Source: Caecitellus pseudoparvulus (taxonomy: Eukaryota; Protista; Bigyra: Bicosoecida). From it: a stretch of 64,000 nt of DNA. Both the position numbers and the translations under genes were made by a program. The notes beneath the pieces are model-generated. The model made no database searches. It saw only the letters and a list, made by a program, of their open reading frames with translations, and was not told the origin of the DNA. Within the stretch, counting starts at the first letter, position 1. Every line of letters begins with the position of its first letter. Below, one piece after another: positions 3,791 through 24,458 of the stretch. The stretch is from positions 62,001 to 126,000 of the forward strand of contig CBFFRQ010000089.1 in assembly GCA_965644315.1 (NCBI GenBank), read 5' to 3'.

Positions 3791-4132
3791 CTGAGGGGGG
3801 CTTCGGCCTGTTGCCTGACACGCGGAGGGGGCGGAGCCGGACACCTTTGAGGGGCATGCTCCACACATTCTTGCGCACCAGGCGGCACCCACCTGCAGAT
3901 GCTTTCCTATTCGCTTCTCCGAACTTCGTCTTGCTCTTGCTTTGAGGTGCCCGACCAACTCGGCAGCCCGTGCTCCACAGCGACGCTGCTCGTCACCAGC
4001 ACGTCGCAACAACCGGCATGGGAGAACCCAGCAGCAAGTCGAGACACCGCCAGTGCTTTGGCTGGGATCGATCTCATTTGTAAGTGCACGCTAGGAAAGC
4101 TTGCTCTGCGCTCTTCCTTGCGATTCATTGCC

Positions 4133-5110
4133 ATGCTCCACAGTGCAATCACCCTCGTCTTGGCTATTTCCGCTGCCTTCTTGCTGTTGCTGTTGGTACA
4201 GAGTCGATCGCAGCTTCAAGCCGAGCAAGCCGGCAGGCATTCTGGATACAAAGGGGCGGGTTTCCCTTCTGAAGTGCAAGCTGGGGAAAAGGCGACTGCC
4301 TCAGCACCTAGCGTTCGGGGCGCAACTGCGCCAACTCCAACTCAGGCTCCGCAAGCACGCAAGCGTAACCAGTGCGATTGGCTGAAGGCAGCGGTCGATG
4401 CTCCCACTGAACAGGATGTGAATGTCTTTCAAAAACACTCACACACTCAGAGTGGCGAAGACAAGCTTGTCGTGGAGCACTACCCAACTGTGGCGCTGCG
4501 CAAGGGTGGCACCATCTTGGAGTCTGGCGCATTCGATGGCAAGCGATTCAGCACTTCCTGGGCGTTTGAGCGCACCCTGCAGTGGAATGCCATCCACATT
4601 GAGGCAAACCCTCGTACCTTTAAAAGTCTTGAGGTAAACCGCCCACCCAGTGAACGGGTCATCAACCTGAACATCGCACTCTGTGACAAGCCTCGAGAGG
4701 TGCACTACGTAGACCATGTTGACCCATTCCCTGCAGCTGGCATCTGGGAGTTCTTGAGCATGCGCATGCGCCGGACGTACTACCCTGACATTCCTATTTT
4801 TGCTGAGAAGCCTGAGGGAGCAAAGACCACAATCGTTACCCCCCTGCAGTGTCTGCCGCTGGACCGTGCGTTGCCGCCAGATCGCCATAACATTCACATT
4901 TGGGTGCTGGACGTGGAAGGAGCGGAGGTGGAGGTGCTTCAGGCCACGGACTTTTCGAAGCTCAGTTTTGGAGTCATCATTAAGGAGACTGTGGATGACT
5001 ACATTCGTGAGCAGCAAGCAACGGAGATACTGAAACGCAACGGCTACGTGCGGGTGAACGAAGTCGAACGCTCCACCTGGTATGTGAATGAGTGCCTGCT
5101 GGACGTTTAG
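4133..5110 (+). CDS. FkbM-family (Methyltransf_21, Star-like) SAM-dependent methyltransferase, type II membrane protein, 325 aa
   Basis: N-terminal anchor MLHSAITLVLAISAAFLLLLLV. Motifs TQSGED, LESGAFDGKRFSTSWAFERTLQWNAIHIEANP and VLDVEGAEVEVL. Intronless. Confidence 0.88.
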   Translation: MLHSAITLVLAISAAFLLLLLVQSRSQLQAEQAGRHSGYKGAGFPSEVQAGEKATASAPSVRGATAPTPTQAPQARKRNQCDWLKAAVDAPTEQDVNVFQKHSHTQSGEDKLVVEHYPTVALRKGGTILESGAFDGKRFSTSWAFERTLQWNAIHIEANPRTFKSLEVNRPPSERVINLNIALCDKPREVHYVDHVDPFPAAGIWEFLSMRMRRTYYPDIPIFAEKPEGAKTTIVTPLQCLPLDRALPPDRHNIHIWVLDVEGAEVEVLQATDFSKLSFGVIIKETVDDYIREQQATEILKRNGYVRVNEVERSTWYVNECLLDV

Positions 5111-6604
5111 TGCGCATTAAGCTCCCCAATGCATGCGACTGTGACCACCTGTGCTGTGAACCCACCATCATGAGATTTCTGAGGGGGGCGACATGCCTTT
5201 GGGGGGTTGTCCTCGAACAGGTATAGGTGGTTGGGGTGGGGCAAACACCCTCTTGGGGGTACACTGGCGAAAAGGTAGCTGGCTGTGCATTGCTGGGGGG
5301 GGGGGGGCTGCGGCACCTTCTAGCTCGCGCTGGCCTGCCATACTCCAGCAGGCAGCGTTGTGCACTGCAATGCATGCCCCCGCGTCCACCACACCCGGCT
5401 CCGCGCACTCAAGCATCTGGCCATGCATCTGCGCCGCTGGCCGCCTCTGCCATCAAGAGCCACTCGTGCAGCCCAGCACTGTGACGAGCTTCCCTTGGTC
5501 AGTCAGGGCGGTACACAATGTCTCCTGCAGCATCGCGTCTCAGATGGCCTGTGCAGGTGGGGGGAGGATGCTCGCGTGGCTCTACACCCTGACACCTGCA
5601 GCGACGGTGCAGCCGCTTTCTGCACAAGTCACCAGCGCAGCAGCCTCGTGCACTCACCATGGCAAGCTCGCGTCACAGTGGGGCTTGGCTCTCATGACCA
5701 GGCCGCCAGGTCCTCCATTCCTGTGAAAGGGGGGGGGGCAGTGGCATGGGTGATGTTGTGGGAATGCCAGACACCGGCTGCATCGCCAGGCATGGTGAGG
5801 AGCGCGAGCGGGCCACGCACCATTCAGGCCGTCCCAGTACAGTATGCGGCAGTCAGGCAGGTACTTGGATCATCCCAGCGAGCACTGTGAATGTCTGACC
5901 GCGTGGCGTACGTGTTTTGCGGGCGAGGGTGCCGCGACTGCGCAAAGGGGCGGCGACGGAGGCAGGCGGCACCAAAGACCAGAGCAGGCAGTCCCACCCA
6001 CCCCCAAAGGAAACTGCCGCGCTTCTAGTAGGCACCGATAAACATCATATCAATGGTCTCATTTCTGTGGCGCTGGAGCTGGCACGGGTGTGGGGCGGTG
6101 CCTTGCAATGTGCCTCAGCGTGGGCACGAAACGCCACGCGGAGCGGGGTGCTACCCCTGTCCCAAGGCACCGCTCAAAGCATCCATGGAGCGCAGTCTAC
6201 GATGCAGCAAGGTCGATTTCCTGAAAAAGGCGTGCTCTGCCAGGGGGGAGCTCGGGTGCGGGGTTCCTGCACGTAGTGGAGCATTGGTGTGACTCGGCTG
6301 GCGACGCCAACACTGCGAGCGGCTTGGCAGGCCCATGCACGGGCCTGCAGCCTGGATTGGCACCTGCAGGCTGCGGCCATTACACTCCTTCGCGCCGTCA
6401 TGTGTCTCACTGCGCAGGAGCGGGCGCCAAGGGGGTGAGGTGTTCCCTGCCGTTGCAGGCGAAACGTCTGTCACGCAGACTGTGTGCCGCTCACGTCTGG
6501 TCACTCGTGCAGGAACCTGCAGGCCATGGCTCCAACACTGTGCAAGTTTACACTGCGAGGACAAAACGACACGCTCTGCTCAGATTTGATTAAGGCGGGC
6601 ACCT

Positions 6605-8998
6605 CAAAGGTGTCCGGCTCCGCCCCCTCCGCGTGTCAGGCAACAGGCCGAAGCCCCCCTCAGCCGGACACCCGGGTGTCCGGGAACTGGCCTTCGGCCA
6701 GTCCCCGTACCCCCCCCTCAAAGACCTCAATAGATGATAACCTGTGGTCCATAGCAGCATTTTATGGGTAGAACATGTCTTCTTGTGTCATCCTCTGTGA
6801 ATCTGTGTGCTTGTGAAGTTGCTTTACGTGGGGTACCGGGTCCTGGGCAGAGCACGAGAGCAACTGAATGGTCTCTTCGACAACTTGAATAGATACTGCT
6901 GCGGTTTTCCACTTGGACAGGCAACCTTGTCCTACTCAACACGGGGCCAAGCCCAAATAGTGCCAAAAGTGCACGATATTGCCTGCAAGTCACTGTTTCG
7001 GTTGGCTTGGTGATCTGCGGTCTGTCTGGTGTCGCTTGCCTGGATGGCCAGAGCTCTGCGCACTCAATCCTGTTCAAGGCGCGGAAGCAATGAGGGGTGG
7101 AAAAAGAATGCAGACACACTTTGCTGTGGAACCTTCCCCAAATTTCGCAAAAGGGGGGTAAAATCACGCAGGAGCGGTGCCTTCAATGAGCTCAGGCATC
7201 CACCCGCTTGGACCATCATTGAAACTTGACTCCGCAAGCAGTGACTCAGGCCTGAAAGCAAAGCCCGCAAAGAAAATTACACCCAAACTCGATATTGCAT
7301 TGGCAAACTCACTTCAGCACCTGGTCAGCATCCCCTTACCCCAAGAAGTGATCCCTGCTTCCCTCCACCAGACCTCGGCGCCTTCTTGGCACCCCTTGGA
7401 GGCGCTCCTCCTGCACGAACCCTCTTCGTGCCACCAACAACCAGGCGCAAGTAGCCCATTCGGGCTCTTGCCGAGTGCCTGGCCCTGCTCCTGGCGCCCA
7501 GGGCGGACTGAAGAGCTGCTCACTTTGAAGGAGGGGGTCAGCCAGTCCTTGCTGCGCTGAGCAACATACTGTTGATTGGAAAGCAACAACAGTTCGCTGC
7601 CAAACAGTTGTGTGTGTCCTGGCCCTCTTACCACTGGCACACTAGTCGGTCAGCACGGAGAAGAAACGCTCAGCGCCTGCACTTGTGACCGGCGTTGGGT
7701 ACACTGCCCGCGCGACATGAGAAAGGAGGGGCTGAAGAGCTCGTTTCCCCCTCCTACATGCCTCCACATGCTTGCAGAATGCGGCTAGGTTTGTGCTGTC
7801 GCTGCAGACCGCACCGGATGCAAGCATTCTTTGACTCCCGCAGAGCGTATCGAAGTCACGCCAGTCACCCACAAGGCCCCTCTGCCAGATTCATGCGCAA
7901 ATCAGCAGCAATGTGGCCAGCTGCTCGTCGAATGTGGCAGTGCGTCGTGTTTGAAGAGGCTTCTGAGCCCCATCAGGCCATCAGCTGGTGGTTCTCAAGG
8001 GTCGTGACCTTCGCGATCTGTTCCGGCGACAGCCCAATCGAAGTGAAGCTCTGCACCAGAAGCTTTCGAACCACTCGTGAGCAAGACTTGCTGTCACATG
8101 CGATCGCCTTTGCCGACACAGGTGCTGTCTGCAGAAGCACCTGTGCCTCATGTACGAGGTTCCGTGCATCGCCTCGCAGGGCAATGTGCGCCTCACTGCC
8201 AGGCTGAGCTTTCATGGGCTTCTAAGAAGTTGACGTCTTAGCCAGTGCAAGGACTTCTCGCTTGGTCATGCGATGCTTGGCCGGAAAGGGCTTTCTGATT
8301 AGCGTTTCCTTTCATGCTTCAACAAAGCACTTCAGAGTCTGGGACCACTGGATTGGTTTCCCAGTCCGCGAATCTGACCGCTGGAAATCCCCGAGACTGT
8401 TCCCTTTTGCCTTCCAATCCTTCAGCCCAAGAATTGCAAGCAGGGGGAAGTCGCCAATACGCGGATCTTGGCACACAGCCTTCCAGTTCTGAACTGCAGC
8501 CTCCCCCTGGTTCACGGTCTTCGTCTCGCAGAAGTGACGGCATGCGTCCTGACTGCAAAGCACTCGCAAGAGACAGCCATAGTGGGCAGGGCCTTGCACC
8601 TATGTGAGAAATTAAGAATTTGAGGGAGCTTAGTGACAGTCACAGCCTTCTCAGACTCTGCCGCGCCCTCTGCCATCATGCAGCGAAAGTGAAACGTGAC
8701 CGAAACCCCGGCTGACAGCACCTCCGTTGCAAACGAGTCTGGTTGTGTTCAGGAGCCTAGGGGCGTAAATATCAAGCCCCACAACTAAATCGTTCATGTG
8801 GTCTGGTGTACTGACGGCAAAGTGGCACTTGGCCCTGCTCGGGAACCAGCGCTGGCAGGCAGATGGAGGATGAGCGTCTCCCAGCGCCTTGGACACGGGC
8901 GACGAGGGAGGGGGGGTCCACAGGGGGCACCCCCCCTCAGGTTGGGGTGTCCGGCATCTCAGCAAAAAGGTGCGGAAATAGCTTTCCGGACACCCCTG
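6605..8998 (-). mobile_element. hAT element, copy 2 (inverted)
   Basis: CAAAGGTGTCCGG at 6605 and CCGGACACCCCTG ending at 8998. Flanks in element orientation are AGGGGGCT and AGGTGCCC, which do not form a TSD. Confidence 0.85.
7555..8599 (-). pseudogene. hAT transposase remnant (copy 2)
   Basis: Identical translation to 1856-2900 (ORFs 7642-7872, 7973-8215, 8312-8599). Confidence 0.8.
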
Positions 8999-9288
8999 AG
9001 CCCCCTGGTGTGAGGCGAACGCCAGGGCCTGGTGTGGCCTCCGTAAGCTGTGACAAAAGCAGCATTGTGGCTGGTGCAGGAGAGAGAAAGAATGGCAATG
9101 CTCAAGCACGCCAGCAGCATTGAGAGACTTCCGCAACACAAAATAAACCACATCTCCACGAAACGCTCAGACACAAGTGAGAGCTGATCGCCCTAAGTGT
9201 TTACAGCATGCCACTGGATGCAGGAGCGAGTTGGCGTCAAGGCCACACTTCCACTCCCAAAGGCGCGCTCGGCAGCTGATCAAGTACC

Positions 9289-11164
9289 ATGGCAGGCAGT
9301 GCTAGCGATCGCCAGGAAGAAGAACTATCTACATGCCATCGATTTTCTCCCGTCGCCTTGCTGCTAGTGTCGGTGGTTGCTTGTGAGAGAGCAGGTCTGG
9401 TGTCGGCACTTCCACGAAACGCTGCACAACGCAACCTTGCTTTCTGCAGATCTGGCCCTTGGGATTCCGAGCCAAGCAGGTAAAGGGAGCTCAACTTCCT
9501 CCTTGCGATCAGATGACTCCGAGCACAACTCCACTGCACTCGGGGGCGATGGTGCAGGAGCGGCAGACGGGAGCAGTCCAGGCCGCAATCGACGCGAGGT
9601 GCCGACCCCAAACGCTTCCCCCTCATTCGGAGCATCAGCTTCATCATCAATCGCCCCAAGCACCTCTGCTGCCTCCCACTCATCGACCCCTCTGCCATCC
9701 CCCTCGCCTGTGTTCGAGGATGTCAAGCGTGTGAACCTCTCAGAGCCAGCATTGCGCCACGCATTTTGCTCTGACGGTCGGCAGCCTCCAAACTTGCTGC
9801 TGGCACTGGATCCACGAACTAAATACGGCAGGGCGTCAAACATGGAACTTTCTATCAAAGGTTTGATGGTGACAGGGCTGAGCTTGGATGCCATAGTGGT
9901 GCTGCCAGGCTGCTTGAGCGGCTTGCCAACTCACATGGCGAAGCGATGGGCGCCACAAGCTGCTCACGTTGCAGCTGAACTAACAACATGCTGGGCATCC
10001 CTGGCCCTGTCGAAAATGGGTGGAGGGGCCTCTGGTACGAGCGCACTGCAAGGCATCGACGCTGTGGTCCACTGGTCTGGAGGATCGGGCAAGTTGGACG
10101 GGGAGCTGTACCAAGACAGCTCCAGCGCAGGATGGGTCCCGCATGATACCACAGATGAAGGTTGTAGTGTGGCCTGGCGATCTGAAGAGTCTGCGCACGT
10201 GGGTCCTGCTTCGCTCCCGGTGGCTGCCTGGCCCGCAGGCTGGCGCAAGGACGACAAGGGCTGGCTCCAAGCACGTGAAGAAGCTGAAAGGACCCACCAG
10301 CATCAGCTTGTGTTTGTACCTCGAAAGCACATTTTTTACGTTGGATTGCATGAAAGAACGGGCCACTCGATGATCTTATCGCACCCCTTGCACGCTGTCG
10401 CCGCCTGGATGCTCGCCGCAGCGTACGGACCCGCCGCAAGCGTTGTCGGAGTGCACGTCAGACGGGGTGATTGGGCAGCTACTTGTGCGAAACAAGACCA
10501 TTGTTTCATCAGCGACGAGCAGTATGTGGCGGGCGCCGCAGATGCCTTGGCCCGCTTCGACATGCACAACATCTACATCGCCAGCAATGACCCCAAGCCC
10601 ATCCTGGCCCTCCTGCACAAGGAAGTGCCGCTGCCGCCCTTCGCACCCGCACTGTCGCCCACCGATGCAGCAGCGGGCACACCAGGCCGTCCCATGGCCG
10701 TGCTCCCTGTGCTGGCTGGTCAGTCCCGCTCGGCTCGTGCACGGAGTGCTGCTGCTCCCGCCAACGCCACGACATCCCCCGCGCCCTCCAGCCTGCTTGG
10801 CCTGCAGGTGCACCGCATCCTCACGCTGGACGACCTCATGACCACGCTGACCCAGATGTGCAAGGGGGCGGGCACTCCGCCCGACACCTTGCCGCCGTTC
10901 GTGCGGGTGCAGGACCCCGCTCAGGAGCACGTGCACGACTACATGCTGCCTGATACGTGCGCAGTGTGGCACTCGTGGGCGCCAGGGGGCAAGGCCACGG
11001 GCAGAATGCTGGGCTGGTTGGACAAGGCGGTGCTCACCCTGACGTCGTGTGTCAGGGTAACGCCGTACAGCACGTTCTCTGGCAATGTGCTTGACATGCG
11101 CCGGGCTCAGTTCGGGCCTTTGCTGTGTGACCACATTGTCGAAGACATCCTCCTCCCCTCCTAG
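9289..11164 (+). CDS. O-fucosyltransferase-like GT-B glycosyltransferase (POFUT/FUT8/NodZ-like), type II membrane protein
   Basis: Predicted intron 9383-9449 (GTGAGA...TTTCTGCAG) joins MAGS...VALLLVSVVA to YLALGIP, completing a TM anchor. Motifs GRASNM...IVVLP, VGVHVRRGDW, IYIASND and LDKAVL...YSTFSGNVLDMR. Confidence 0.8.
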
Positions 11165-12164
11165 AAGGAAATGCATTGTCGCCTCTTGCTTTCACCACAC
11201 TCACCTCACACTTGCTCCTGAAAGAGAAGCGCACGCTTGCTCAGCGCAGATATCTTGCACAAAGCATGGTAAGTCACCATGTGAAATGAGCATGTTCCAT
11301 CGAGAACGTGTTAGTTCAGTGAAAGTTGTCGTGAATCAGGGGTTCGGCGCTTGTTGGGCGAGTTGGGTTCGGGTTCGGGCTTCTCGTGGTGGTGGGCAGG
11401 CGTCGCAGTGACTCCGCGCACACCGCGCCACCCGGCGACCCAAACGACCCGCTGCGCGTTACGACACCGGAAGTTTCACAATGCCATCTTAGAATGCACT
11501 ATCAACCCAATGCACGCTTTCATCACTCACTTTCTTGCTCCTCCTCCGGTCCGGCATGGCCCAGGAGCGAGGTAGGCCGGCATGGTCCGGGCGGCAGGCT
11601 GCGCGCGTTCCACACCTGCGCTCTCAAGTTGAGCTTCTACGATATGATTAAACGCGACCCCACAGTATCGGATGCACGTTTTCATGACTTGCGTCCATCC
11701 GGGAGGTGCAGCGACCACCTCGTGGGGCCAGTAGACACTTTTGCCATCCAAGGCACTCCCAGAATTCGGGAGCAACATTTGCCGCATAGGCCCGGCAAAA
11801 GCCTCCAGTTCTTCAGCAGCTGAGAACTGACTTTGAAACAATGTAAAGACGTATCTTTGACACAAGCACTGATGGTAATTGCATTTCATTTCAGTCATGC
11901 TCCCTTCCAGCGGTTGAAGGTTCATTGTGTAAAATGCAACAGAATTCGTTTAAGTCACCAGCCCTGCACCAGGCAAATCTGGTCTACGAGTGGAAACTTG
12001 CTCTGATTTCGTTCAACCAAGCAGCTCTCGATTTGTTGTTGTATCGAACTTGGAGGCAGGTGCCAGTCTCGACTTCCCGGATCCCTGCCATGGATGGCAA
12101 CACACTGGCAGTGGGCAAAACATACTCGCGCCACCCCCAGTATTCTCGCTGACAGGGCACAATT

Positions 12165-15100
12165 TTGGTGTCCCGTGGAGGATATTTGCAGACATGGATT
12201 GATTGTTTGGGCTGCCAGAAGCCCAACAGGCGGGTTTTTGGCATGGCTCAGCCCAGTTTGGCGGCGTCGCCCACGCCCCTTCCAGCGCAGTCTCCGCCAC
12301 AGGATTCGGAACCAGAGCCGTTCGTGATTAAAGTTTCATCCTCTGATGCCTCTCACTGCGTGCGATGTGCGGCCGGAGGCAGGAGCAGGCTGAAGGGCTG
12401 CGAGTCTCGCGAGGGCTGCCCCACATTGATGTGGGGCAGTCATCACGTCCAGGACGCAGCACCACTGTTCGCGAACAGGGCGTCACTGGCGAAGGAAGGC
12501 TCCAATAGCTTCTCCAAGCATCGATATGGACAGGCGCGGGCCATGAAGCTGGGGGCAGGTGCGTGTCATATTGCATAGCCAGCACATTGAGCCTCCCCGC
12601 GGCGCAGAATCGGCCGCCCCGCACCATGTAGTGGTGGAAATGTCTGATGCTCCGCCAGAAGTCGTGATTGCCGATCTATATGCGTGTCAAAGCGCCTTGC
12701 TCGCCACGCCACAGCGCCATGGCAGTGGTGCTGCCTCCACGCAGGCACTGGCTCTGGCTCTGGAGGCGTTGGCAGCCCAGCCATGGATCCCCCGAGCCCC
12801 AGCTCCGAGTGGACGCTGTCTCCGCGGGCCATCGCAGACATGGCTGAACAACTCTGCGGTCGAAGCCTGTCAGATGGCCACAGCACCACCTGGTTCACCC
12901 AAGCCTTCGACAGCGCCCGAGACATGGTGCGGGCCGGTGCAGCTACAGCTAGCCGGCTGCTGCTGGACGCCGCCCCTGTCGGCGACGAGTTCATCCAGCA
13001 GTACACCAAGGACGACGTGGCTCCTGATTGCCTCCTTCAGGCCCCCTCGGACATGATCTTGCCTCCTAGCGCGGCTGCCTTGGCTGGCTCGGTGGGTTCA
13101 GTGCTGGGCATGCTCATGGCGTCTCCTGCGCAGCCTGTGACTCTGTGACTGCCTGGGGTGACCGTCATGGCCGCCTGTGCAGCGCTGAGCCTGGCTAGGC
13201 TGCGGCCTCAGCATGGATGAGGGGTGCTGATGGCCTTCCCTGACAACTCTGCTGAGCTGGGCGTCGCGTCGGCGCTGCGAGATGGGGAAGGCTCCATGGG
13301 CGCCGCAATGAAAGGGGAAGCGACTGAGAAACAAGGCAACATGCTGCACAGGTACGTTGAGCCGTGCGAGAACATGGAGGGCAAGGCAAGCACCCTGGCA
13401 GGCACGACACACGCCGTCACAAGAAACTCCTGGGCTGTGCAGCCTGCTGCGAACGCTGCCCTGGCAGGCTCACTGTACGGGCACTGCATCCCCACCCGCA
13501 AGCAGCCCGTCACCCTGGTCGTCCAGCCAGTGGGCCTCGCTGCCACCCACCCGGCCTGTGGCGAGCAGTCATCCTTCCTACCTCGCCCTTCTGGTCCCTG
13601 CCCCAGCAGGACTGTGCCGCGGAGCCCAGACGGCCACAGCCTGCCAGCCAGTGAAGCATGCTAAGCAGTGGCAGCCGCAAGACGGTTGCACCTCGAAGTC
13701 GCAGTGACCGCACAAGCTGGCAGGGCGGCCCAGGTGGGTGACCGACCCATCCCCGCAGAGGTCCAAGCGGACCTGGACCAAATGGAAGCGGACCTGAAGG
13801 GAAGCATGGCGCACCCCTCCATGCGCACCGAACTCACAGTTCTATCCGCGGCCAGCAAGGGCTGGACTGATGTGTGGCAGCAGCTGCCATGGGGCACCTG
13901 TCCCAAGGCAGGCAGCTGCCACGGCACATGCACGTGCATGACCAATGGCGCCCACCGCGCGAGGCAGTGTCTGTTCACCAGCTTCAGGGGAGTTCAGCCT
14001 GTAGAAAAGGTGTTGTTGCTACGCAGAAGCCACCAATTTGCTGACACGATTGGGTGGCAATCCTTTATGGAGGGTCAAGCACCAGCTGTACCCAAACTTG
14101 CTGCCAGATGGATCGACCCCCCAGGGATGAAGGACCGCAGACCGGTCCTCTCCATACCATGCAAAATCGCCAGCACAATTCTCGTGGACAAAGCTGCTGC
14201 TACGAGCCTGTGGGAGAACTACGTCGACCATCGCCGCGAAGGCATGGTCAAGGTGCAAAAAGCCTTCTGGCGAGACCTCATGCGGCCCGTTGAACACAAG
14301 GCGGACTCCTGGAAAGAGACGCTGTTCAGAAAGCACGCCTCTCTCGGTGAATGCCCTGAAGTGCAACAGGCACTGGCCCAAGCCGTGCGCGGAGCCAGGA
14401 AGCACGTCTTAGGCAAGGTATGATCCAGCACATGTGTCATGGTCCTACGGGGCGCCATCCTGCACATCTACCATGCCGCTGTCAAGCCGCATGTGGAGGG
14501 GTACCTGCAGGCCCTCTCACGCTTCGCTGGCACCGCCAGCGTGGAGTGGACCTTTGCATCTTCGACCCGGGTGCACGTCGCGGGCCCAAAGCCCCTGCCC
14601 AGGGCCCCAGCTGCACCAGAGAGCCCACAGCACAAGCCGGGCGAGGAAGAGCCTGGAGATGAGCCGGATGCGGAAGAAAACAGCGACAGCGACAGCGACG
14701 AGGGCTCAGAGGATGGAGCCTGTGCGGGCAGCGAAGGCCAGGCCACGCGCGGGCCACAGGCAAGACCCGGTGGCGAGTAGCTCCCAGCACTGCCACAGTG
14801 GTGGGCCGGTACGGCTTCACCCTGCAGCCCCTCATGTTCACGGGCTACGAGAGCGCGGCAAACTTGGCCCAGGTCCTGGACTCCGTGCTGCACAGGCTGA
14901 AGGGACACCTGCGGGAGCGCGGCCCGGCAGCGTCCCACCCCAGCGTCATCACAGTGGCCAACCTCAAGGCCAGGCAATCATCGACGTGCACTTCCTGCTG
15001 CTGCGGAAAGGTGTGGTGCGGTCGGCAGTGGACCCGTGACACTTTGCCAGTCGCGTGGCCAGGGCCACTCCCAAGCAAGCCATGCACAAGGGGGGCCCAC

Positions 15101-16381
15101 TCATGATCAAGCTGTGGTTTGACACAGTGGAGTGGACCCGGACGCCTGCATTGGGCGTGGTGTCTCCCAATTGCTCCTTCCAGGGGATGCTGTTGCTCGC
15201 CAACGAGCCGCCTTGGACTTGGCTGAGCCAGCCGATATCCAGGCCTTCATCGACTGCGCCCGCCGCATCTTGCAACGCAAGTCCCTGTCAGACTCCCAAA
15301 AGACACAAGTCCAAGAATTCCTCACAGCCTATGGGTGGGCCCTGTATGGGCCAGGGCGTGCAGTTGGGGCTGCCGCAAAGCTTCGCGAGCACGCCCCCCT
15401 CGCTCTGGCTGCTGCATGTGCCACTTCAGCTTGCATGCTGCTCCGTCGGTGCCAAGGAGATCACTTCACGCCAACTCAAGCTGGGCTGCACCCGAGCGGG
15501 GTGCCCATCCTTCCCCTTCACATTGGGCCCTGCACTCACAAGCAGGCCTCGGCGGCACTGGAGCGGGCTGTAAGCCTGTTTCGCCAGGTGTGGGCGTCTC
15601 AGTCGCGGGGTGGCGCAGGCACTGCCGTGCGAGGCCGCACCACACGCGGCATCCTGGACCCCAAGTCCTCCTTCCCCGCCACTCGCGCTCGGGTCAAGGC
15701 GTCATTGCAGAACGACGTGGGGCTCCAAGGCTTGCTGGATGGGCGTGACGCGGTGCACGGCGCCACCACCACCGGGGCAATGAGAGCCTGCACTCAGGCA
15801 TGCGGCACATGGTGTCAGCGGGCACATCCACTCGCCTGGATGTTGCCGAAATGAACCTCACGCTGTACTGGCTGGAGAAGAACAAGGCCACTGCTGCCAA
15901 GCTGCTGTCCAAGTGTGCGAGCGATAAATGCCGACAAGAAGAGACACGCAGCAAGTCTCAAGACGTTGCAGACACTCTGAAGTTTTGCTCTGTACTGACT
16001 GGTGATGTAGGTGGCTTTGCTCGAGGTACCATGACAGCAGCCTTGCAGAGCTGCCCGGATGCATCGGCCCCTCCCACGTTTGATGAAGCCAGGGCCTCCG
16101 GCCTGCCCCTGTGCAACAAGGCCACCTCGTCTGTCACGCCAGAGGTTGAAGAAGATATTCGCCGACTGCTCAGGGAGGAGAGGAAGACGCAAGAGGCCAA
16201 GACTGCCAAGTACAGCCCCAACACAGCAGCGTCCCGCATCGCCTCAGCCGCTCACGCCACTGTCGGCCAGGTCGAGCGAGTGGCCAGCTTGATGCAGCAA
16301 GAAGAGCAGTTGGCCCAGCGGGAGAAGCGACCAAAGCTATGGAGTATCAGCCCGTCGAGTGCCAAGCGGGCTCGGCGGTGA
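12165..16381 (+). pseudogene. Decayed large DDE transposase-like gene of the C/D-x-x-H class (Mutator/IS256/ISL3-related; DUF6729-like N-terminal region)
   Basis: One frame runs from 12684 to 14780 with only isolated stops, then frameshifts. Ordered motifs: CP..C..G (~13900), SVEWTF (14538), VVGRYG...ESAANL...PSVITVAN (14798-14965), VDP*HFASRV (15028) and TTG-NESLHSGMR (15779). No termini found. Confidence 0.6.
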
Positions 16382-16769
16382 GGACTGGAGCAGGGCCAAC
16401 TACTCTCCGGCCGGATGAAGGGAGTTTTCATCCGCACACTTGCTTGCCTGCCTGAACGCAGCCGAAGGAGAGGGGCTGTGCTCGCCCCACCAAGTCTTCC
16501 CCATTGCCTTCTCTGCCGGCCCATGGACACTTGTGTGTCATCAGTCTCCCTTGAATGTTGTGCTGCTTGTACCAGACAGTGCGGATGTCCACGGGGGACA
16601 CGCTGCCATTCTCCCCAACAGACAGGCAGACCGATCCACGCCAACTGAGGTCCGAGCTCAAAATCCACAAACACTGCAGCTACGAGCACACCCCTATTCA
16701 GGGTGGTCTCCCTTCTCCAAATGCGCCCTCCGTTCCTTGGGTAGGACTTTGCATTCTTGCGCTGGGAAG

Positions 16770-19700
16770 ATGCGCTGCCCCAACGCTATAAAGCGTCGCG
16801 GCGACTGCACTGCCAAGTGTCGGCTATGTCTGCTGCAGCCTTGCCTGCAGCGAACGTACAAGATAACCCACCTTGTTGGCTTACCACTTGTGGCATTACT
16901 GCTTTGTACAGTGGGATATGTCGGTTTCTTCTCGCTCCACTCGTCAGCCATTCAAGAAGAAGTCTGGCGTGGCGAGGCTGTTCCCAACGCGTTTCGAGCT
17001 CAGAGGGTGGCCTCTGCCCTGCCCTGGGAGCAGGGCAGAGGGGGTCAAGTAAGTCTCATCACGCACAGTGGCAAGCGTTCAGGCGTGGATGCAGCTGAGC
17101 ATGCTGCTTCCGTGTCTGGCTGGCTGAAGGCCCTTGTTGTGCCATCCAGTGTCTCGGAAGTGGTGGTGGTAGTGGACGACTCTTGGGATGCATCGGCGCT
17201 GCCAAGACATTCACACCAAGGAATACCCATAGTGACCCAATTGACCACAAGTTCAGAGCCTTTCCCACTGCGAACACTTCGGGAAGCTGCTCGGCAGCGC
17301 ACTGATGTAGTGCTGCTCGTTGATCCCTTTGCACCAGCTTCAGCTCAGGCGATGGGCAGCCTCGCGCACTTCAGCGAAGAGAACCTGTCAAGTATCGTCG
17401 GCCCGATCACTATCAGCGAAGGCAGAGCCTCGTCCCCCAACTTGAATTTCGGTTTTGTGGCTCTGAGCCCGGCAACAGCCGGCATTCTGGCACTTGAGGC
17501 TTCAGCGCACCCTCGCGCGTGCCCACACCAACTGGCCACACAAGCTGGCGTTCCCCAAAAAGTTGTATCGCTGCCCGGGTCTGAGCAGAGCTTGCTCGTA
17601 GCGTTCTCTTCGTCGCCAAGTACAGTGCTGACTGGGAACGTGAAGACAGACTGGGTGCCTCAGGGTCCAGTCCCTGCGAAGTCCCCTGCCAGCTGTCCCC
17701 CCATGCAGGAGGCAGGATCGACTTTCGGTGCCCATTCAACTGCTAGTGCAATGAGCCCCCTGCCAACTGTGCTGAGTGCACCATCCAAACATCTTCGCGT
17801 GTTCGTCTATGACATGCCTGCGGAGTTTGGCTCGAACCTCCTTGCTGCTGCACAGCACAGGAGCGGAAAAACCAACAAGTGCTCCTCTTCGTTCTATGCG
17901 AGCGAACAGCGAGTCCACGAGTACCTCATGGCCTCCCACTGGCGCGTGCAGGACCCAGCGCTAGCTGACTTGTTCTATGTTCCCGTTTATGTTGCTTGCG
18001 CTGTGAAGTCGGGGCTTCGAGTTCAGCTTCAGCAGGAAGGCACGTCAAAGCCTGGCTTTGCACCAGACTTTAGAGCACTTCAATCCCTGATGCATGCTGC
18101 GTTGGCACACATTCGGCGCGAGTACCCCTTCTGGGACATGTCTGGCGGCCGGGACCACGTGTGGACCTTCACTCAAGGTGCTGGAGCAGCGGTGTTCGGC
18201 GAAGAGTTGTGGGACGAAGTGCAGCACAGCATCTTCTTGACGACGAATGGGCAGCTGTCCGAGAAGCACTTCAGGTTCGGACATGACATTGTAATTCCAT
18301 CCTTCATGGGCAGGAAGCCAGGCATTCTGGCCCATGACCCGCTTTCGTCGCCGCCGTCGCGGGACACAGCTGTGTACTGGGGTGGCTCACTCATGGAGGA
18401 TCGGCGGTACTCGAGAGGGATGCGGCATGCTCTTGTCGACGCGTTCAATGCGGGTGAGCTGGCTGGTGACGTGCTTGTGGAAGTGTCGGCAGGCGCGTGG
18501 CGAGATACCTTCACCGCCCAGCTCTCCAGTCGATTCTGCTTGGCGCTCGAAGGCTGGTGGGCATGGACTCCCCGACCATTTGAGTCTGTGCTTCAGGGCT
18601 GCGTGCCTGCGCTGGTTTCAAATGACATCGTTCTGCCATTTCAGCGGTTTCTGCCATGGGACACCTTTTCCCTCAAGTTGAGCCCCACCCGGGGAATAAA
18701 AGCAATCGTGAGCCTTCTGCGGGCCATTCAAGGTGCTGAGCTGAGATCTCTCCAAGCAGGGGTCCTGCGTCACTGGCGAGCCTTCCACTGGACAGCACCT
18801 TACGGACAGGCTGGAGCATACCTTGGGGCAGAGCTGCTGAATCGAGTGCAGCAACTCAAGAGTGAGCGGATGCTCGCTACGAGCCAGACTTGGCTACCCT
18901 TGCAGCTGTCGGCAGAGTGGGGCGTGCCTGTTGGGGTGCCTGCAGTTTCTGCGGGTTTGATTGGCTTGGATAGCTCGACTCAGTACATCCTGCAGCGAAC
19001 CATGACATGCGCCGCACTGAAAGCAGCACAGCGACAGCGTTGTGACCTCTCCGGGCGTACCCATTGCTTCAAGGAAGAGCTATCGCCATTGATTTGGCAG
19101 GCTTGCCCAGATCTTGACTTCGGCTTCAGCTCGCTGCGAGAAGCCATTCGCCTGGGGGGCGACGTTCGCTCTGGTGCAGCTTCACAGCCAGTCGTTCGGA
19201 CCATCCAGTCGTCTACAGGCGATGCAGTGTTTGTCATCACCCCACATCTGCATGTGGGCCACGCGGTGACTCCCAGAGCGGGTGAAGAGCCGTCCAGTGG
19301 TGATCTTTGCCTTGCAACGCAGCTCAGCGTGGACAGGCTTCAAAACCTGCTTGATTTGGTGGAGAAGTGGAACGGCCCCGTCTCCGCCGCAGTCCTTCTG
19401 CAAGGGAGCAGCTGGTCACATCAGCGCATCTTGGAGGTGATCCGGCGACGCCCCAGAGCTGCAAAGTGGCTGTCACTGCATGTAGTGGTGCAGCTGGGAG
19501 CTGGTGTCGATTCGCACAGAGTTTACCCTGTGAACATGCTTCGGTCCATTGCACAGCAACTGGCATCCGAGCACATGGTGCTTGTGCTTGATGCTGATGT
19601 TGTGCCGTCAGCAGACATGGCAGGTGTTGCGGCAGCCCTTGCGGCAGCCCAAACCGCGTTCGCGGACGAGCTGCCGGATGGTTCTGCTGCATGCCGCCCC

Positions 19701-21325
19701 GGCAAGGATGTCAACTCGGATGGCTTCAACGCAGGTCCCCACAATCCGTTGGCTGACACGCAGTCCTGCGCTGGCTTGAGGGCATTTGTGCTGCCGTCCT
19801 TCGAGGGGCTGAAGAACAGCCAGAGTGCGACGAGCGTGACCACACGTGAAGCACTTCGAAGCAAGGTCATGGACGGCACCATGAGCCCGATGCATGCGTA
19901 CTACCCTCGAGCGTATTTCCCGGTGGACTATGGGCGCTGGGTCGAAAGCACCGATGACTCAGTGTACACTGTCCCGTACTCTCCTCACTTCGAGCCTTAT
20001 GTCATCGTTCCCCGGTACGCCCCACTCCCAAACGCGAGCTTCATCCAGCGGGGGCTGAACAAAGCGCAGTGGGCATATCACTTGCATGCTGCTGGGTACA
20101 GCTTCACCGTGCTGCAAGGCGTGTTTTGTGTGGATGTGCCAACCGGCTTCACTGGGCAGCGACCGCGAATGGTGGGCGTGTTTGACTTGTGGGAACGTAT
20201 GTCCCAGGATTTCCATGAACACTTCGGAGTTGTCCGCTACAACCACAAGAACGTGAATGCTGTGGGGCCCTTCCTGCGCCAAGTAGCCTCCAGTCTCCCG
20301 TGGGCTGACAAGGCGGATGCGTTCATTGTGAAGCGAGGGGGGGCAAGGGTTTCTAAGGCGACTGGCGGCGGCGCCAGTGCTGATTTGGAGCGCTTGCATG
20401 GACAGCGAGTGCTTTCAGTCTATTTAAGGGTCTGTGCCCCTGATCACGAACTTGTTGCCCTCGTAGAGCACTACTGCGGGATTCCGCTTGTCAACGACGT
20501 GACAGTAAGCTCGCGTTGCGGCCAAGTGCCGCGTTGGGCGGCTGACGTGTGCCCGGCAGGGAGTGTCATGCTCGTCACGAGTGGACGCTCCAGCAAGGAC
20601 CCTGTGACGCTGAGCCAAATGCCAGCCCCTGCGTACGTGCTGCTCGTCTTTGCCTTCACGCTTACATTGTCAATGTTTTACCCACCTTCTCTTTCTCTTT
20701 CTTACAGAACTGATTGCGTCCTTCACGTTGAGGACAATGTCAAGCTCTCTGTGCAGGATATCGCGGCTCTTCATTCTGCTTGGATTCAGAACCCCAACGT
20801 GCATGTGGGCCTCAACCCTCTTTTCATTCAAGTACCATCCGTATCGGAAGATGAGTCGCAGTGGAGTGCTCACAAAGTCGACCCACTTCAGCTTGGAATC
20901 GCTTACAATTCCATGCAGCTCAACGCTTCACTTCTGCATGCAGATTGGTTGCAGCTCTTTTCCAGGTTGGACAGCGAAGTAAGGAGCGCCGGCTTGCAGC
21001 ATGTGCGCAACCCGTTGCCAGTACACGACTGCGTTTTGTCTCGCAGATCACAATTCCTAGGCATGGCTCGCCGACGTGTGAGCAAGTGTTCATTTCGTTC
21101 GTCGTCGCGCGATACAGCCAAACTCCCCCGCTCGTCGTCATCCGACAAGGACATGTTGGGAAAGGTGAGCTACGTGGCGCAGAGTTGGCTGCTGTGAACA
21201 GCTCTGCTGGCCTGCTGGATTTGATGGGTGCACTTAAAGAGTGCGGCCATGCGGCGCTGAAGCATTTCCTGGGGAACCCGTTGTTGCGAAGTACGGCGCG
21301 TGTTTTCAATGAAGTTCCATTCTAA
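16770..21325 (+). CDS. Multidomain glycosyltransferase: TM anchor + GT2-like GT-A + GT47 (exostosin) + GT49 (LARGE/B4GAT1-like) + GT64 (EXT C-terminal)
   Basis: TM LVGLPLVALLLCTVGYVGFF. GT2-like EVVVVVDDSW...TDVVLLVDP...IVGP (17157-17403). GT47 LRVFVYDMP, DPALADLFYVPVY, PFWDMSGGRDHVW, SRFCL...FESVLQGCVP. GT49 LATQLSVDRL, YPVNMLRSIA, VLDADVVP, FEPYV, GLNKAQW. GT64 TDCVLHVEDN, CEQVFISFVVA...PP, C...FLGNPLL after removing introns 20633-20707 and 21003-21046. Confidence 0.88.
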
Positions 21326-21928: not shown

Positions 21929-24316
21929 CTACACACCAAACAGTTGCCGCACTTGAAAGGTGTGCCAGCCCGAGGTTGGAGCAACTTTGGGTGGCGCATC
22001 ACGAGAGTACGGGTAGCGGCTTAGCACCTGATCTGTCGGCAGCTTTTGCCACTCCCACTCTGTTCGCATGGCCATTGCAGTTTCTGACAATGTGCTGTCC
22101 ATGTCAGCAAGCAGAGTTTCGCACCCGGCTGCCAGAGCCATGTCCGTCTGCAGCCGCAGCAGCGGTGAGCAAGCAAAGTCCGTGCCGCGACCACCTGTCG
22201 CATGCATGCAAGTCGAGAACGGATCATTGCCGCCCATGCTAGGGACTATGTCACCGAGTGACAGCAGCGAGCCGGGTAGGCGGCAGGTCGCATTCGGCGA
22301 CAAGCCGGACTCAGGTGGCCCTGCACACTGTGGTAAACGCTGCCAGGCTGCCAAAAGGGAAGGCATTGGTGTCATGACATAGATGGGGAGCCCTGCAGAG
22401 AACCGCACAAAGTGGTTCAGGAGCACGAGGGCAGAAGGCTCTCCTTCTGGCCACTTCGCGTGCTTCAGCCAACGTGCATAGAGCACGTTGCTCAAAGGTG
22501 AGCGGAGCAGAGAGTCAACCTCCGCATCTGACAGGATTTGCTTGCTCCAGTGACCATCTTGCACCCTCATCTGCGCGCTAATGCATCGCTCACTTGCGGC
22601 TGCTGACCGATTCTCATCCCTCCCTCCACCACCCATTGCTGCTGCACGACGCGCGAGCAGTTGCCCCACGCTCAGTGGCACAGCTGCAAGGAGCGGACTG
22701 AGAGAAAACACGCCAAGTGCTTGTGAAGGCCGGAGGTTCTGGCACCGGTGCTTTCCGTACTGGTCATCGCACCAGTCATATGGGAAAGAATACAGCACGC
22801 TCCGGCTGGCGTTCAAGGATCTCTCAACGCAGATTCCGTCAGGAGCTGGTCTGCAAGAATCGTCCACGGTAGCGTTGCAGTGCTGCAGTGGCTTCAGCCC
22901 ACTCCCCAGCAGCATTGGTCTTGCATACCTTTTGGCGGCAGCGATCTCTGCAATTCGATGCGAGCCTGCCCCGACAGAGAGCTCCTTGAAACCCGGTGTC
23001 TCCAGGAAAATTGCATCCAAGCCGCATTCTTTACCAGCCACAGGCATATGCTGCAGGCCCAGGGATTTGGCATTCAAAGGAGCATGAAACACGGACAACA
23101 CTCCCGCCCCAAACACGTCTTTTTGTGGGAGGGGCTTCGGCGAATGTTTGCGACCACGGTCAGAGTGGTGAGGAAGTAAAGGTTGAAAGGACAGGCGCAC
23201 ATCATACCATCCTGATCCTCGACGCCACAGCTGAAACAAGGTCGACAGAGCCTGCATCTGTGTCTTGAGCTGATTGTTTGGCCCGAAAAGGCCTGCTGCA
23301 GCTAGCAGTCTGCGTTGAGGGCGTGGCGCTGCTCGAAGGCCTTCAAGTACCCCGCTCACTTCAAGCAGTGCAGCAATGCGCTGCCCCCAGCGCTCCAATG
23401 CAGCCTGTGCGCTGCCACCTGCCGGCTGCCGTGCATGGCGCTCCGCCGCTGGCTTCAGTACGTGGGTCCGGCAGCCGTAGCTTGGGGCGAACCTCCCATA
23501 TGGCCAAGGAGAGCTCGCCGGCACCAGCTCCGCTGTGCTCCCAGGCGCAACCCAACAAGACAATGCCTGCAGCGGTGTTACACCTGTCCACGGCCACCCA
23601 CCAACCGCCTGCCCTGCCAGGTACGCTGGCAGCCACTGCCATGACGGCGCACTTCGTGTGGCCCACAGCAGCACCCGTGCCAGCCACACGCCCTCCACGC
23701 AGGCATGGCGGGAGGCCCACTGAGACCCCTGCACATCTTCACACTCGCTGAACTGCGAGCTCCCATCTCTTGCGGGGGCCTGGTACACAGTCACTCTGCT
23801 GGTGCATCGGTCTATTTCCGCAACCTCATCTGCACTCAATGACGTCCCAGCGCCCAGCACCAGGGCCAAGCTAACTCGAGTATCAGCAGCCCCACTACTG
23901 CACCATGCACTGGGCCACTTTGTGCCACTGGACGGCAGCACATGGAGCAGGACCAGTCCACCCTCCATGGCTTGTGAAGCGTTATGGTGCCACGCCGCAG
24001 GCACCAGGCCTTGTGCCAGAGACGCCCACGCAGCTGGCAGGGACGGCAAGGCAGCATGGAGAGTCGCTGTATTATTCGCATGATTACCTTTAAGCTCAGA
24101 TGACCCTCGAAGGCCATTTCCACCGAGCTCCACTTGCAGAATGTTTCCAGTGACGAACAATCCATTCACGAAAGCCAGGTGAAGGAAAACTGCACAGGCG
24201 GCCAGAAGCCAGCACCAAAAGTAGCGGATAGAAGTGCTCCGTTTGACGCTTTCAAGACTAGCGGAGCTGCTTGCGTTGGGCGAAAGCGCTGATGGTGCCT
24301 GTGGCGCCTCTGGCAT
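21929..24316 (-). CDS. Second O-fucosyltransferase-like GT-B glycosyltransferase, type II membrane protein (~795 aa)
   Basis: TM YFWCWLLAACAVFLHLAFV. Motifs GPNNQL, ISAQMRVQD, PIYVMT and TDMALAAGCETLLADMDSTLS. First ATG at 24316. Confidence 0.65.
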   Translation of the reverse strand: MPEAPQAPSALSPNASSSASLESVKRSTSIRYFWCWLLAACAVFLHLAFVNGLFVTGNILQVELGGNGLRGSSELKGNHANNTATLHAALPSLPAAWASLAQGLVPAAWHHNASQAMEGGLVLLHVLPSSGTKWPSAWCSSGAADTRVSLALVLGAGTSLSADEVAEIDRCTSRVTVYQAPARDGSSQFSECEDVQGSQWASRHACVEGVWLARVLLWATRSAPSWQWLPAYLAGQAVGGWPWTGVTPLQALSCWVAPGSTAELVPASSPWPYGRFAPSYGCRTHVLKPAAERHARQPAGGSAQAALERWGQRIAALLEVSGVLEGLRAAPRPQRRLLAAAGLFGPNNQLKTQMQALSTLFQLWRRGSGWYDVRLSFQPLLPHHSDRGRKHSPKPLPQKDVFGAGVLSVFHAPLNAKSLGLQHMPVAGKECGLDAIFLETPGFKELSVGAGSHRIAEIAAAKRYARPMLLGSGLKPLQHCNATVDDSCRPAPDGICVERSLNASRSVLYSFPYDWCDDQYGKHRCQNLRPSQALGVFSLSPLLAAVPLSVGQLLARRAAAMGGGGRDENRSAAASERCISAQMRVQDGHWSKQILSDAEVDSLLRSPLSNVLYARWLKHAKWPEGEPSALVLLNHFVRFSAGLPIYVMTPMPSLLAAWQRLPQCAGPPESGLSPNATCRLPGSLLSLGDIVPSMGGNDPFSTCMHATGGRGTDFACSPLLRLQTDMALAAGCETLLADMDSTLSETAMAMRTEWEWQKLPTDQVLSRYPYSRDAPPKVAPTSGWHTFQVRQLFGV

Positions 24317-24458
24317 CCCACCTCCAAATGCGAAGCCGGCAACTTCCCCGCCCAATTGAAGAAAACTGCCAACGACTTAGACGAACAGGGTCTGTTGTAG
24401 AGATCACAACGCCCAAATGCAAGATAATGAATGACATGTGTGTACATTGGTAGGATGT

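Follow-up and report, generated by a model that had tools for sequence, protein, structure and literature searches.

What would a protist make with a single polypeptide that carries glycosyltransferase (GT) modules of the families found in the animal exostosins (EXT) and in LARGE? The question is raised by a gene at positions 16770-21325 of a 64,000-nucleotide stretch of Caecitellus pseudoparvulus DNA (hereafter the window; G000:C89:62001-126000, from a 30.6 Mb eukaryote assembly), which an earlier note had taken for a four-domain assembly line on one polypeptide. We find that the gene is real and expressed, that its predicted product reads, from the amino terminus, as a transmembrane (TM) anchor, a dead GT64-like domain, GT47, a linker, GT49 and a dead GT64 domain, and that by sequence kinship it belongs to a small protist family. 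The reading that we prefer, tentatively and at somewhat less than an even chance, is by analogy that of a Golgi type II co-polymerase with two activities, probably for xylose (Xyl) and glucuronic acid (GlcA), in which the pseudo-domains would serve as a scaffold.

The gene and its transcript

The open frame runs from 16440 to 21197, with its first ATG at 16770; the spliced gene comprises three exons parted by two GT-AG introns, ends in a stop codon at 21323-21325 and encodes 1470 amino acids. RNA-derived contigs confirm the introns, those of run X1 showing both splice joints and those of run X4 the first joint only. The two introns are also implied by the split Pfam match to GT64, of which model positions 75-161 lie in the main frame and positions 167-240 in the one that closes at 21325. 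Introns stand at the same two places in P0001/L021, an orthologue of 95% identity that comes from an independent metagenome (66 and 68 nt), and in the full-length paralogue of contig C62 (76 and 62 nt); seawater samples are among the sequencing runs that contain the gene. Database searches with the spliced model were made exon by exon, the joined protein being used for alignment, substitution-rate ratios and trees.

That separate genes were fused by an error of assembly or annotation is hardly credible. A dispersed repeat and an inverted duplication do adjoin the locus, and the RNA contig pieces, which span 16730-21270 with gaps, include none that covers all four domains or the whole gene alone; against this, the 1288 codons of exon 1 run on without interruption, the same gene stands in the independent metagenome, the paralogue shares both layout and introns, and there are RNA contigs that link domain 1 with the beginning of GT47, and others that link GT47 with GT49.

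Two other gene limits were considered and rejected. The stop at 21197, which closes the unspliced open reading frame and is the one called in P0001, was discarded because the RNA joints and the GT64 model run on into exon 3. The upstream TTG start at 16440 was discarded because a relative has indels in the open frame before 16770, which marks that part as non-coding, and because the RNA contigs begin at 16730. As a separate observation, intron 1, of 75 nt here and 66 nt in the other strain, is in frame and free of stops in both and, if retained, would encode a hydrophobic stretch; the paralogue's intron 1 has 76 nt and a stop, so the in-frame, stop-free state may be chance.

Two domains with catalytic residues and two without

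The GT47 domain matches its Pfam model (PF03016) over residues 339-652 with E 6.5e-47 (160.7 bits against a cut-off of 33.4). Its R602 and E605 align with R346 and E349 of EXT1, which bind uridine diphosphate (UDP) and are required for activity (PMC9675754; PMC9178029), so that the conserved Glu on helix C-alpha-4 and the Arg preceding it are both present. R552, matched by eye, is the equivalent of EXT1 R280, and at the position of EXT1 R340 stands Trp (W596), which plant IRX7-type sequences have there too. A Lupinus IRX7-like protein stands among the best 150 matches (E 7e-24). The RXYLT1_C Pfam model has no match in this protein, and several of the GT47 relatives considered here match it weakly.

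By its alignments and trees this GT47 lies outside the EXT (GT47-G) clade. The match to EXT1 is weak (E 0.011 over 87 residues), whereas that of L032, the genome's own EXT1-like GT47, reaches E 1.2e-30, and the approximately unbiased (AU) test spoke against joining the domain to L032 (p 0.015, L032 being a long branch). It forms a clade with the paralogue, with the metagenome protein L043 and with P0071 and P0117 (support 99/96). The earlier note was correct in placing GT47, GT49 and GT64-like modules on one polypeptide, as Pfam confirms, and in giving it a single TM anchor, which hydropathy places at residues 35-53, but its picture of a GT49 set between two EXT halves does not hold.

The GT49 domain matches Pfam PF13896 with E 2.3e-33 (116 bits against a gathering cut-off of 27) and LARGE1 with E 6.5e-15, the latter match being confined to the GT49 part; GT8 (PF01501), the other half of LARGE, has no match at E up to 1. 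The DxD motif is intact as DAD (D941/D943), as the earlier note had read it, and aligns with the LARGE1 motif (PMC9746966). Where LARGE1 has two His near its metal site, this protein has D1122 and T1125; the second metal-site His of LARGE1 is not conserved in K4CP either (PMC9746966). An AlphaFold model of residues 331-1287 is confident for GT47 and for the core of GT49, which has a GT-A fold, and finds LARGE1 and exostosins as best matches, the top Foldseek match of GT49 being LARGE1. The stem at residues 691-835 has a predicted local distance difference test score (pLDDT) below 50 and no family match, and matches weakly the same stem in the GT49 relative P0007. In the GT49 tree the gene groups with L043, L049, Pigoraptor and stand-alone ichthyosporean GT49s (support 91-97), in a separate subfamily common to ichthyosporeans, Pigoraptor and metagenome eukaryotes. 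As judged by these alignments, GT47 and GT49 retain the residues predicted to bind nucleotide sugar and metal.

The two remaining domains are of another kind. Domain 4 matches Pfam GT64 in two parts, that in exons 1-2 with E 2.8e-4 and that in exon 3 with E 0.021, and scores 49 bits on a GT64 profile that excludes its own sequence (best shuffle 5.8); the GT64 assignment of the earlier note is borne out by profile, as is that of GT49. We mapped its residues through the intact GT64 of L043 onto EXTL2 and EXTL3, with the residue list of PMC9178029. Domain 4 lacks TYxR, WN, NRF, DDD, GFxxR and the C-terminal Arg, and its CED reads CEQ; among the losses are the uracil-stacking Tyr, the phosphate Arg, Asn residues, the Arg of GFxxR and the Asp of CED. 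At the DDD position stands EDN (E1296-N1298, spliced numbering), and SQE in the paralogue. It is a full-length GT64 homologue and a predicted pseudo-enzyme, much as had been suspected from EDN.

Domain 1 had been called GT2-like. It has no Pfam match; an Atlas search places a GT64 cluster first (0.94) and a GT2-like cluster second (0.93), and hhalign to GT64 gives E 0.0015 with a probability of 17% over 43 columns. On the GT64 profile it scores 4.9 bits here and 18.1 bits in the paralogue, with none of 300 shuffles as high in either case. A profile search against the sequences of the Protein Data Bank returned no match for domain 1, and fold searches with its poor AlphaFold model (pLDDT 47) gave generic nucleotide-binding folds only. 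The DDD position reads DPF, and DPM in the paralogue. We favour, weakly, a second and more eroded GT64-like domain, predicted to be inactive. The GT2 assignment was dropped, since there is no Pfam GT2 match and the signal on a profile built from the genome's own GT2 domains stays at background level.

All segments are under purifying selection. The ratio of nonsynonymous to synonymous substitution rates (dN/dS) against the orthologue is 0.14 in domain 1, 0.03 in GT47, 0.02 in the linker, 0.07 in GT49 and 0.12 in domain 4; identity to the C62 paralogue is 35%, 74%, 48%, 60% and 37% in the same order. Of the four domains, GT47 and GT49 are thus the most strongly constrained. The catalytic residues of both GT64-like domains are lost in the gene and in the full-length paralogue, and purifying selection despite these losses suggests that the dead domains are kept for a non-catalytic role.

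These results bear on the possibility that three or four domains are active in a single chain, which would make an EXT/LARGE hybrid glycosaminoglycan. All four domains have been kept in two old paralogues under purifying selection, and an intact three-domain form exists elsewhere (L043/L045, below). Every mapped GT64 residue that binds UDP, metal or acceptor is nevertheless gone, the substitutions differ (EDN here, SQE in the paralogue) and the GT47 is not of EXT type, so that we consider such a chain very improbable. Only GT47 and GT49 keep catalytic residues, and any GT64 step would need another chain. Of the glycosaminoglycan-like heteropolymer proposed in the earlier note, a likely role in an acidic heteropolymer survives; the EXT-type linkage and the four-step single chain do not.

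A proposed two-activity co-polymerase and its competitors

In the co-polymerase reading, GT47 and GT49 would act in turn on one acceptor; we take the two as consecutive because they form the conserved core, co-occur without GT64 (L049) and were fused at least twice. GT47 would attach to the uronic acid a neutral sugar in beta linkage, for which xylose is the likeliest candidate. Plant XGD1 offers a parallel: XGD1 and IRX10 are GT47 xylosyltransferases, and XGD1 acts on a uronic acid (PMC6646851). GT49 would add beta-glucuronic acid to xylose, as do LARGE1 and B4GAT1, both of them characterised GT49 enzymes; for instance, RXYLT1 and then B4GAT1 make GlcA-beta1,4-Xyl (PMC9746966). The product might be an alternating, all-beta xylose/glucuronic-acid chain on cell-surface glycoconjugates, an analogue of matriglycan. 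The dead GT64 domains may act as spacer, dimer interface or acceptor-binding modules, and priming or capping with alpha-linked N-acetylhexosamine (HexNAc), if used, would come from a separate chain with an intact GT64. The genome encodes a UDP-xylose synthase (E 1e-113 to human UXS1) and a gene of the UDP-glucose dehydrogenase family.

Several points weigh against this proposal. The donors of GT47 enzymes vary widely (GlcA, Xyl, galactose (Gal), arabinofuranose). The GT47 clade stands apart, with no characterised member in the trees, and the GT49 subfamily likewise has none; plant IRX7, though matched, is not the sister of the GT47 clade, the plant xylosyltransferase references in the trees being IRX7-like only. 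One manganese-site His of LARGE1 is Thr in this GT49. Two domains could give a one-off disaccharide or side chain, not a polymer, and the intact three-domain relative L043 suggests that GT64 activity was part of the original pathway. We found no published glycan analysis of the organism.

Alternatively, the product of GT47 and GT49 might be a short primer, branch or side chain, or their donors might be different ones (for instance GT47 as a Gal-, arabinose- or GlcA-transferase and GT49 as a GlcNAc-transferase), with no alternating polymer at all. GT47 is multispecific as a family, and many GT fusions of varied order occur in this genome (GT64-GT2-GT2, GT47-GT34), so that fusion need not mean alternation; moreover, Dictyostelium GT49 families are annotated as putative beta3-GlcNAc transferases (PMC3188802). 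We hold this alternative to be quite unlikely, given that GT47 was fused with exactly GT49 repeatedly and independently according to the AU test, and that alternating polymers are what the bi-domain Golgi GT fusions described from animals produce (PMC9178029).

How the two-activity proposal stands beside known systems depends on which partner is compared. The named bi-domain Golgi co-polymerases are animal: EXT (GT47-GT64), LARGE (GT8-GT49) and the chondroitin synthases (PMC9178029). Like LARGE1/2, the matriglycan polymerases that join a GT8 xylosyltransferase to a GT49 glucuronyltransferase, this is a predicted type II Golgi protein with GT49 beside a second, probably xylosyl, transferase and with DxD intact. 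The partner here is however an inverting GT47 of GT-B fold, as against the retaining GT-A GT8 of LARGE, so that xylose here would be beta-linked, and the gene carries two extra dead GT64-like domains and a GT49 of a separate subfamily. With EXT1, EXT2 and EXTL3 (GT47-G plus GT64) it shares a GT47 upstream of GT64, retained pseudo-domains and a reciprocal loss of activity among paralogues; unlike them, its GT47 lacks R340 and belongs to a non-EXT clade, its GT64 is dead and a GT49 is inserted. The GT47-GT64 linkage of exostosins has been placed at the origin of animals (PMC9178029), and the linkage seen here looks convergent with it. RXYLT1 and B4GAT1 likewise combine a beta-xylosyltransferase with a following GT49 glucuronyltransferase, but are two separate animal proteins that act once, on ribitol phosphate. 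IRX10/XYS1, IRX7 and XGD1 resemble our GT47 in their C-terminal motif, in Trp at the EXT1 R340 position and in the conserved Arg and Glu; they are single-domain proteins, and those in the trees, which are IRX7-like, are not its sister clade. The predicted protein would work like the animal bi-domain co-polymerases, but it cannot be counted with EXT or with LARGE, since it lacks features that define each of them.

Its kin among the matches listed are protist and metagenome proteins with the same domain order that share the GT47 clade (99/96), the GT49 clade (91-97) or both (L043/L045, L048/L049, P0019, P0071/P0117). They come from a search of representative proteins (best 150) and a metagenome scan, in which intron-split genes appear as fragments, so that the distribution is a lower bound; earlier word-index searches gave 3-4 proteins each. 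L043/L045, from JGI metagenomes, encode 1200 residues of TM-GT47-GT49-GT64 with two predicted introns and every GT64 motif intact (E 5.6e-42 to EXTL2 for the GT64 of L043). L048/L049 have the same GT47-GT49 and end without GT64, the exon-joining intron having been read by eye. Pigoraptor chileana P0019 has GT49 and a GT64 without DDD, and P0071 and P0117 have a GT47 of the same clade, a dead GT64 and an intact GT64. The GT47-GT49 fusions of MAST-4 and Rhodomonas are of separate origin (AU p 1.8e-6). Among the matches listed, the extra N-terminal dead GT64-like domain occurs only in the gene, the paralogue and near-identical copies; the exact four-module layout is limited to this organism and close strains, and the three-module core is wider in protists.

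The same genome holds complementary proteins. On contig C43, L029 joins a live GT49 to a dead GT64, with introns at the same sites as the gene, and L028, also on C43, like L025, which lies about 25 kb upstream of the gene on C89, has a GT49 without DxD and an intact GT64; L025 is collinear with the gene over GT49-GT64. In the GT64 tree the dead domains cluster by long branches, and its branching is compatible with one clade or with several for the dead and intact GT64s that follow GT49.

This leads to a possibility that we take seriously, although it remains less likely than the two-activity co-polymerase: the gene may be half of an EXT1/EXT2-like heterocomplex, supplying GT47 (Xyl) and GT49 (GlcA onto Xyl), whose partner, L025 or L028, would add alpha-HexNAc to GlcA, the two pairing through their GT64 domains; the product would be a three-sugar repeat or else a capped trisaccharide. 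In EXTL2, EXTL3 and EXT1-2 the dimer interface lies in the GT64 domains (PMC9178029), and EXT2 has a pseudo-GlcA-transferase domain (PMC9675754). The reciprocal decay argues for such pairing, the gene, the paralogue and L029 having a live GT49 and a dead GT64 and L025 and L028 the reverse, as do the collinearity of L025, the intact motifs of L043/L045 and a domain order that would match the order of reactions. On the other side, L049 has the same core with GT64 absent altogether, a recent inverted duplication accounts for the mirrored placement of L025 and the gene, the neighbourhood differs in the sister strain, and the intact GT64 proteins might instead partner the EXT1-like GT47 of the genome. 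That protein (L032, G000:C73:54894-55793) has DxD-type and GRR motifs and no GT64, and is itself a candidate partner.

Taking this one step further, we speculate that an ancient protist three-step Golgi line (GT47, then GT49, then GT64) makes a three-sugar repeat of Xyl, GlcA and alpha-HexNAc, the intact chain persisting in some lineages and being split here into complementary half-dead paralogues that must pair, which would independently repeat the EXT1/EXT2 solution; we regard this wider scenario as rather unlikely.

In the literature searched, mostly outside subscription journals, no GT47-GT49 or GT47-GT49-GT64 fusion is described, nor any other GT49 fusion of a protist or any protist pseudo-enzyme GT heterodimer. 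The GT47, GT49 and GT64 families are known, and what is new within that literature is the GT47-GT49-GT64 architecture, as had been surmised. Protists combine the same three module families differently, with GT47 and GT49 fused at least twice independently and with dead domains kept under selection. The all-intact three-domain, the two-domain and the reciprocal half-dead forms may bear on the evolution of multi-domain glycan polymerases and of their pseudo-enzyme partners. If the proposed chemistry were true, marine flagellates would be expected to carry on their surface an acidic polymer of a new kind, which, we speculate, might have a bearing on prey capture, attachment or the binding of viruses.

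Features of the locus and its neighbourhood

Table 1. Features of the gene in window coordinates, with predicted domains given by residue (aa) of the spliced product.
Feature	Position	Strand	Evidence
Exon 1: start codon, cytosolic tail, TM, domain 1, GT47, linker, GT49, first third of domain 4	16770..20632	+	
Single type II membrane anchor, aa 35-53, behind basic Cys-rich tail	16872..16928	+	hydropathy
Domain 1, aa ~92-295, eroded GT64-like GT-A, predicted inactive	17043..17654	+	
GT47, GT-B fold, aa 339-690	17784..18839	+	Pfam, EXT1 alignment
Stem of GT49 module, Cys-containing, conserved, aa 691-835	18840..19274	+	
GT49 (LARGE/B4GAT1 glucuronyltransferase family), aa 836-1160	19275..20249	+	
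Domain 4, GT64 homologue, aa ~1210-1470, over three exons	20397..21322	+	
Intron 1, 75 nt	20633..20707	+	RNA joints, two runs
Exon 2, with EDN motif at 20730-20738	20708..20978	+	
Intron 2, 68 nt, frameshift if unspliced	20979..21046	+	RNA joint; GT64 model continues in other frame
Exon 3: C-terminal end of domain 4, stop codon	21047..21325	+	

The gene starts 330 bp past the end of one arm of an inverted duplication of 9.85 kb (window 6599-16439 and G000:C89:56014-65855, 99.5% identical), and it and L025 lie symmetrically outside the two arms, facing away from each other. The end of the arm is formed by a dispersed repeat (window 13600-16440) that occurs in more than 25 copies, which are 85-88% identical and in many cases lie near contig ends; the sister-strain contig L021 lacks the repeat at this place. 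The upstream genes differ in the sister strain, so the neighbourhood is no evidence for a conserved cluster.

The region is rich in glycan-modifying genes, with FkbM-type methyltransferase and GT11-like genes at window 3899-5110 and 9377-11164. On the reverse strand at 21929-24355 lies an 808-residue TM protein with no Pfam or Atlas match, which shares a lumenal module of about 240 residues (94% identity) with L025; this suggests recent module shuffling among Golgi enzymes. Elsewhere in the genome, L024 (C89), L026 (C18) and L027 (C54) are paralogous proteins of 1470-1510 residues laid out as TM, intact GT64, GT2, an F5/8C-like domain and GT2; L033 (C69) is a GT47-GT34 fusion, and L030 (C56) is a tandem pair of GT64-like genes. 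A fusion of a chondroitin-synthase-type GT7 with GT47 (P0009, Logan) was also among the matches. The 18S rRNA (L037:1500-3200) looks bicosoecid-like and is short, at 1697 nt, and lies in a tandem array on C81.

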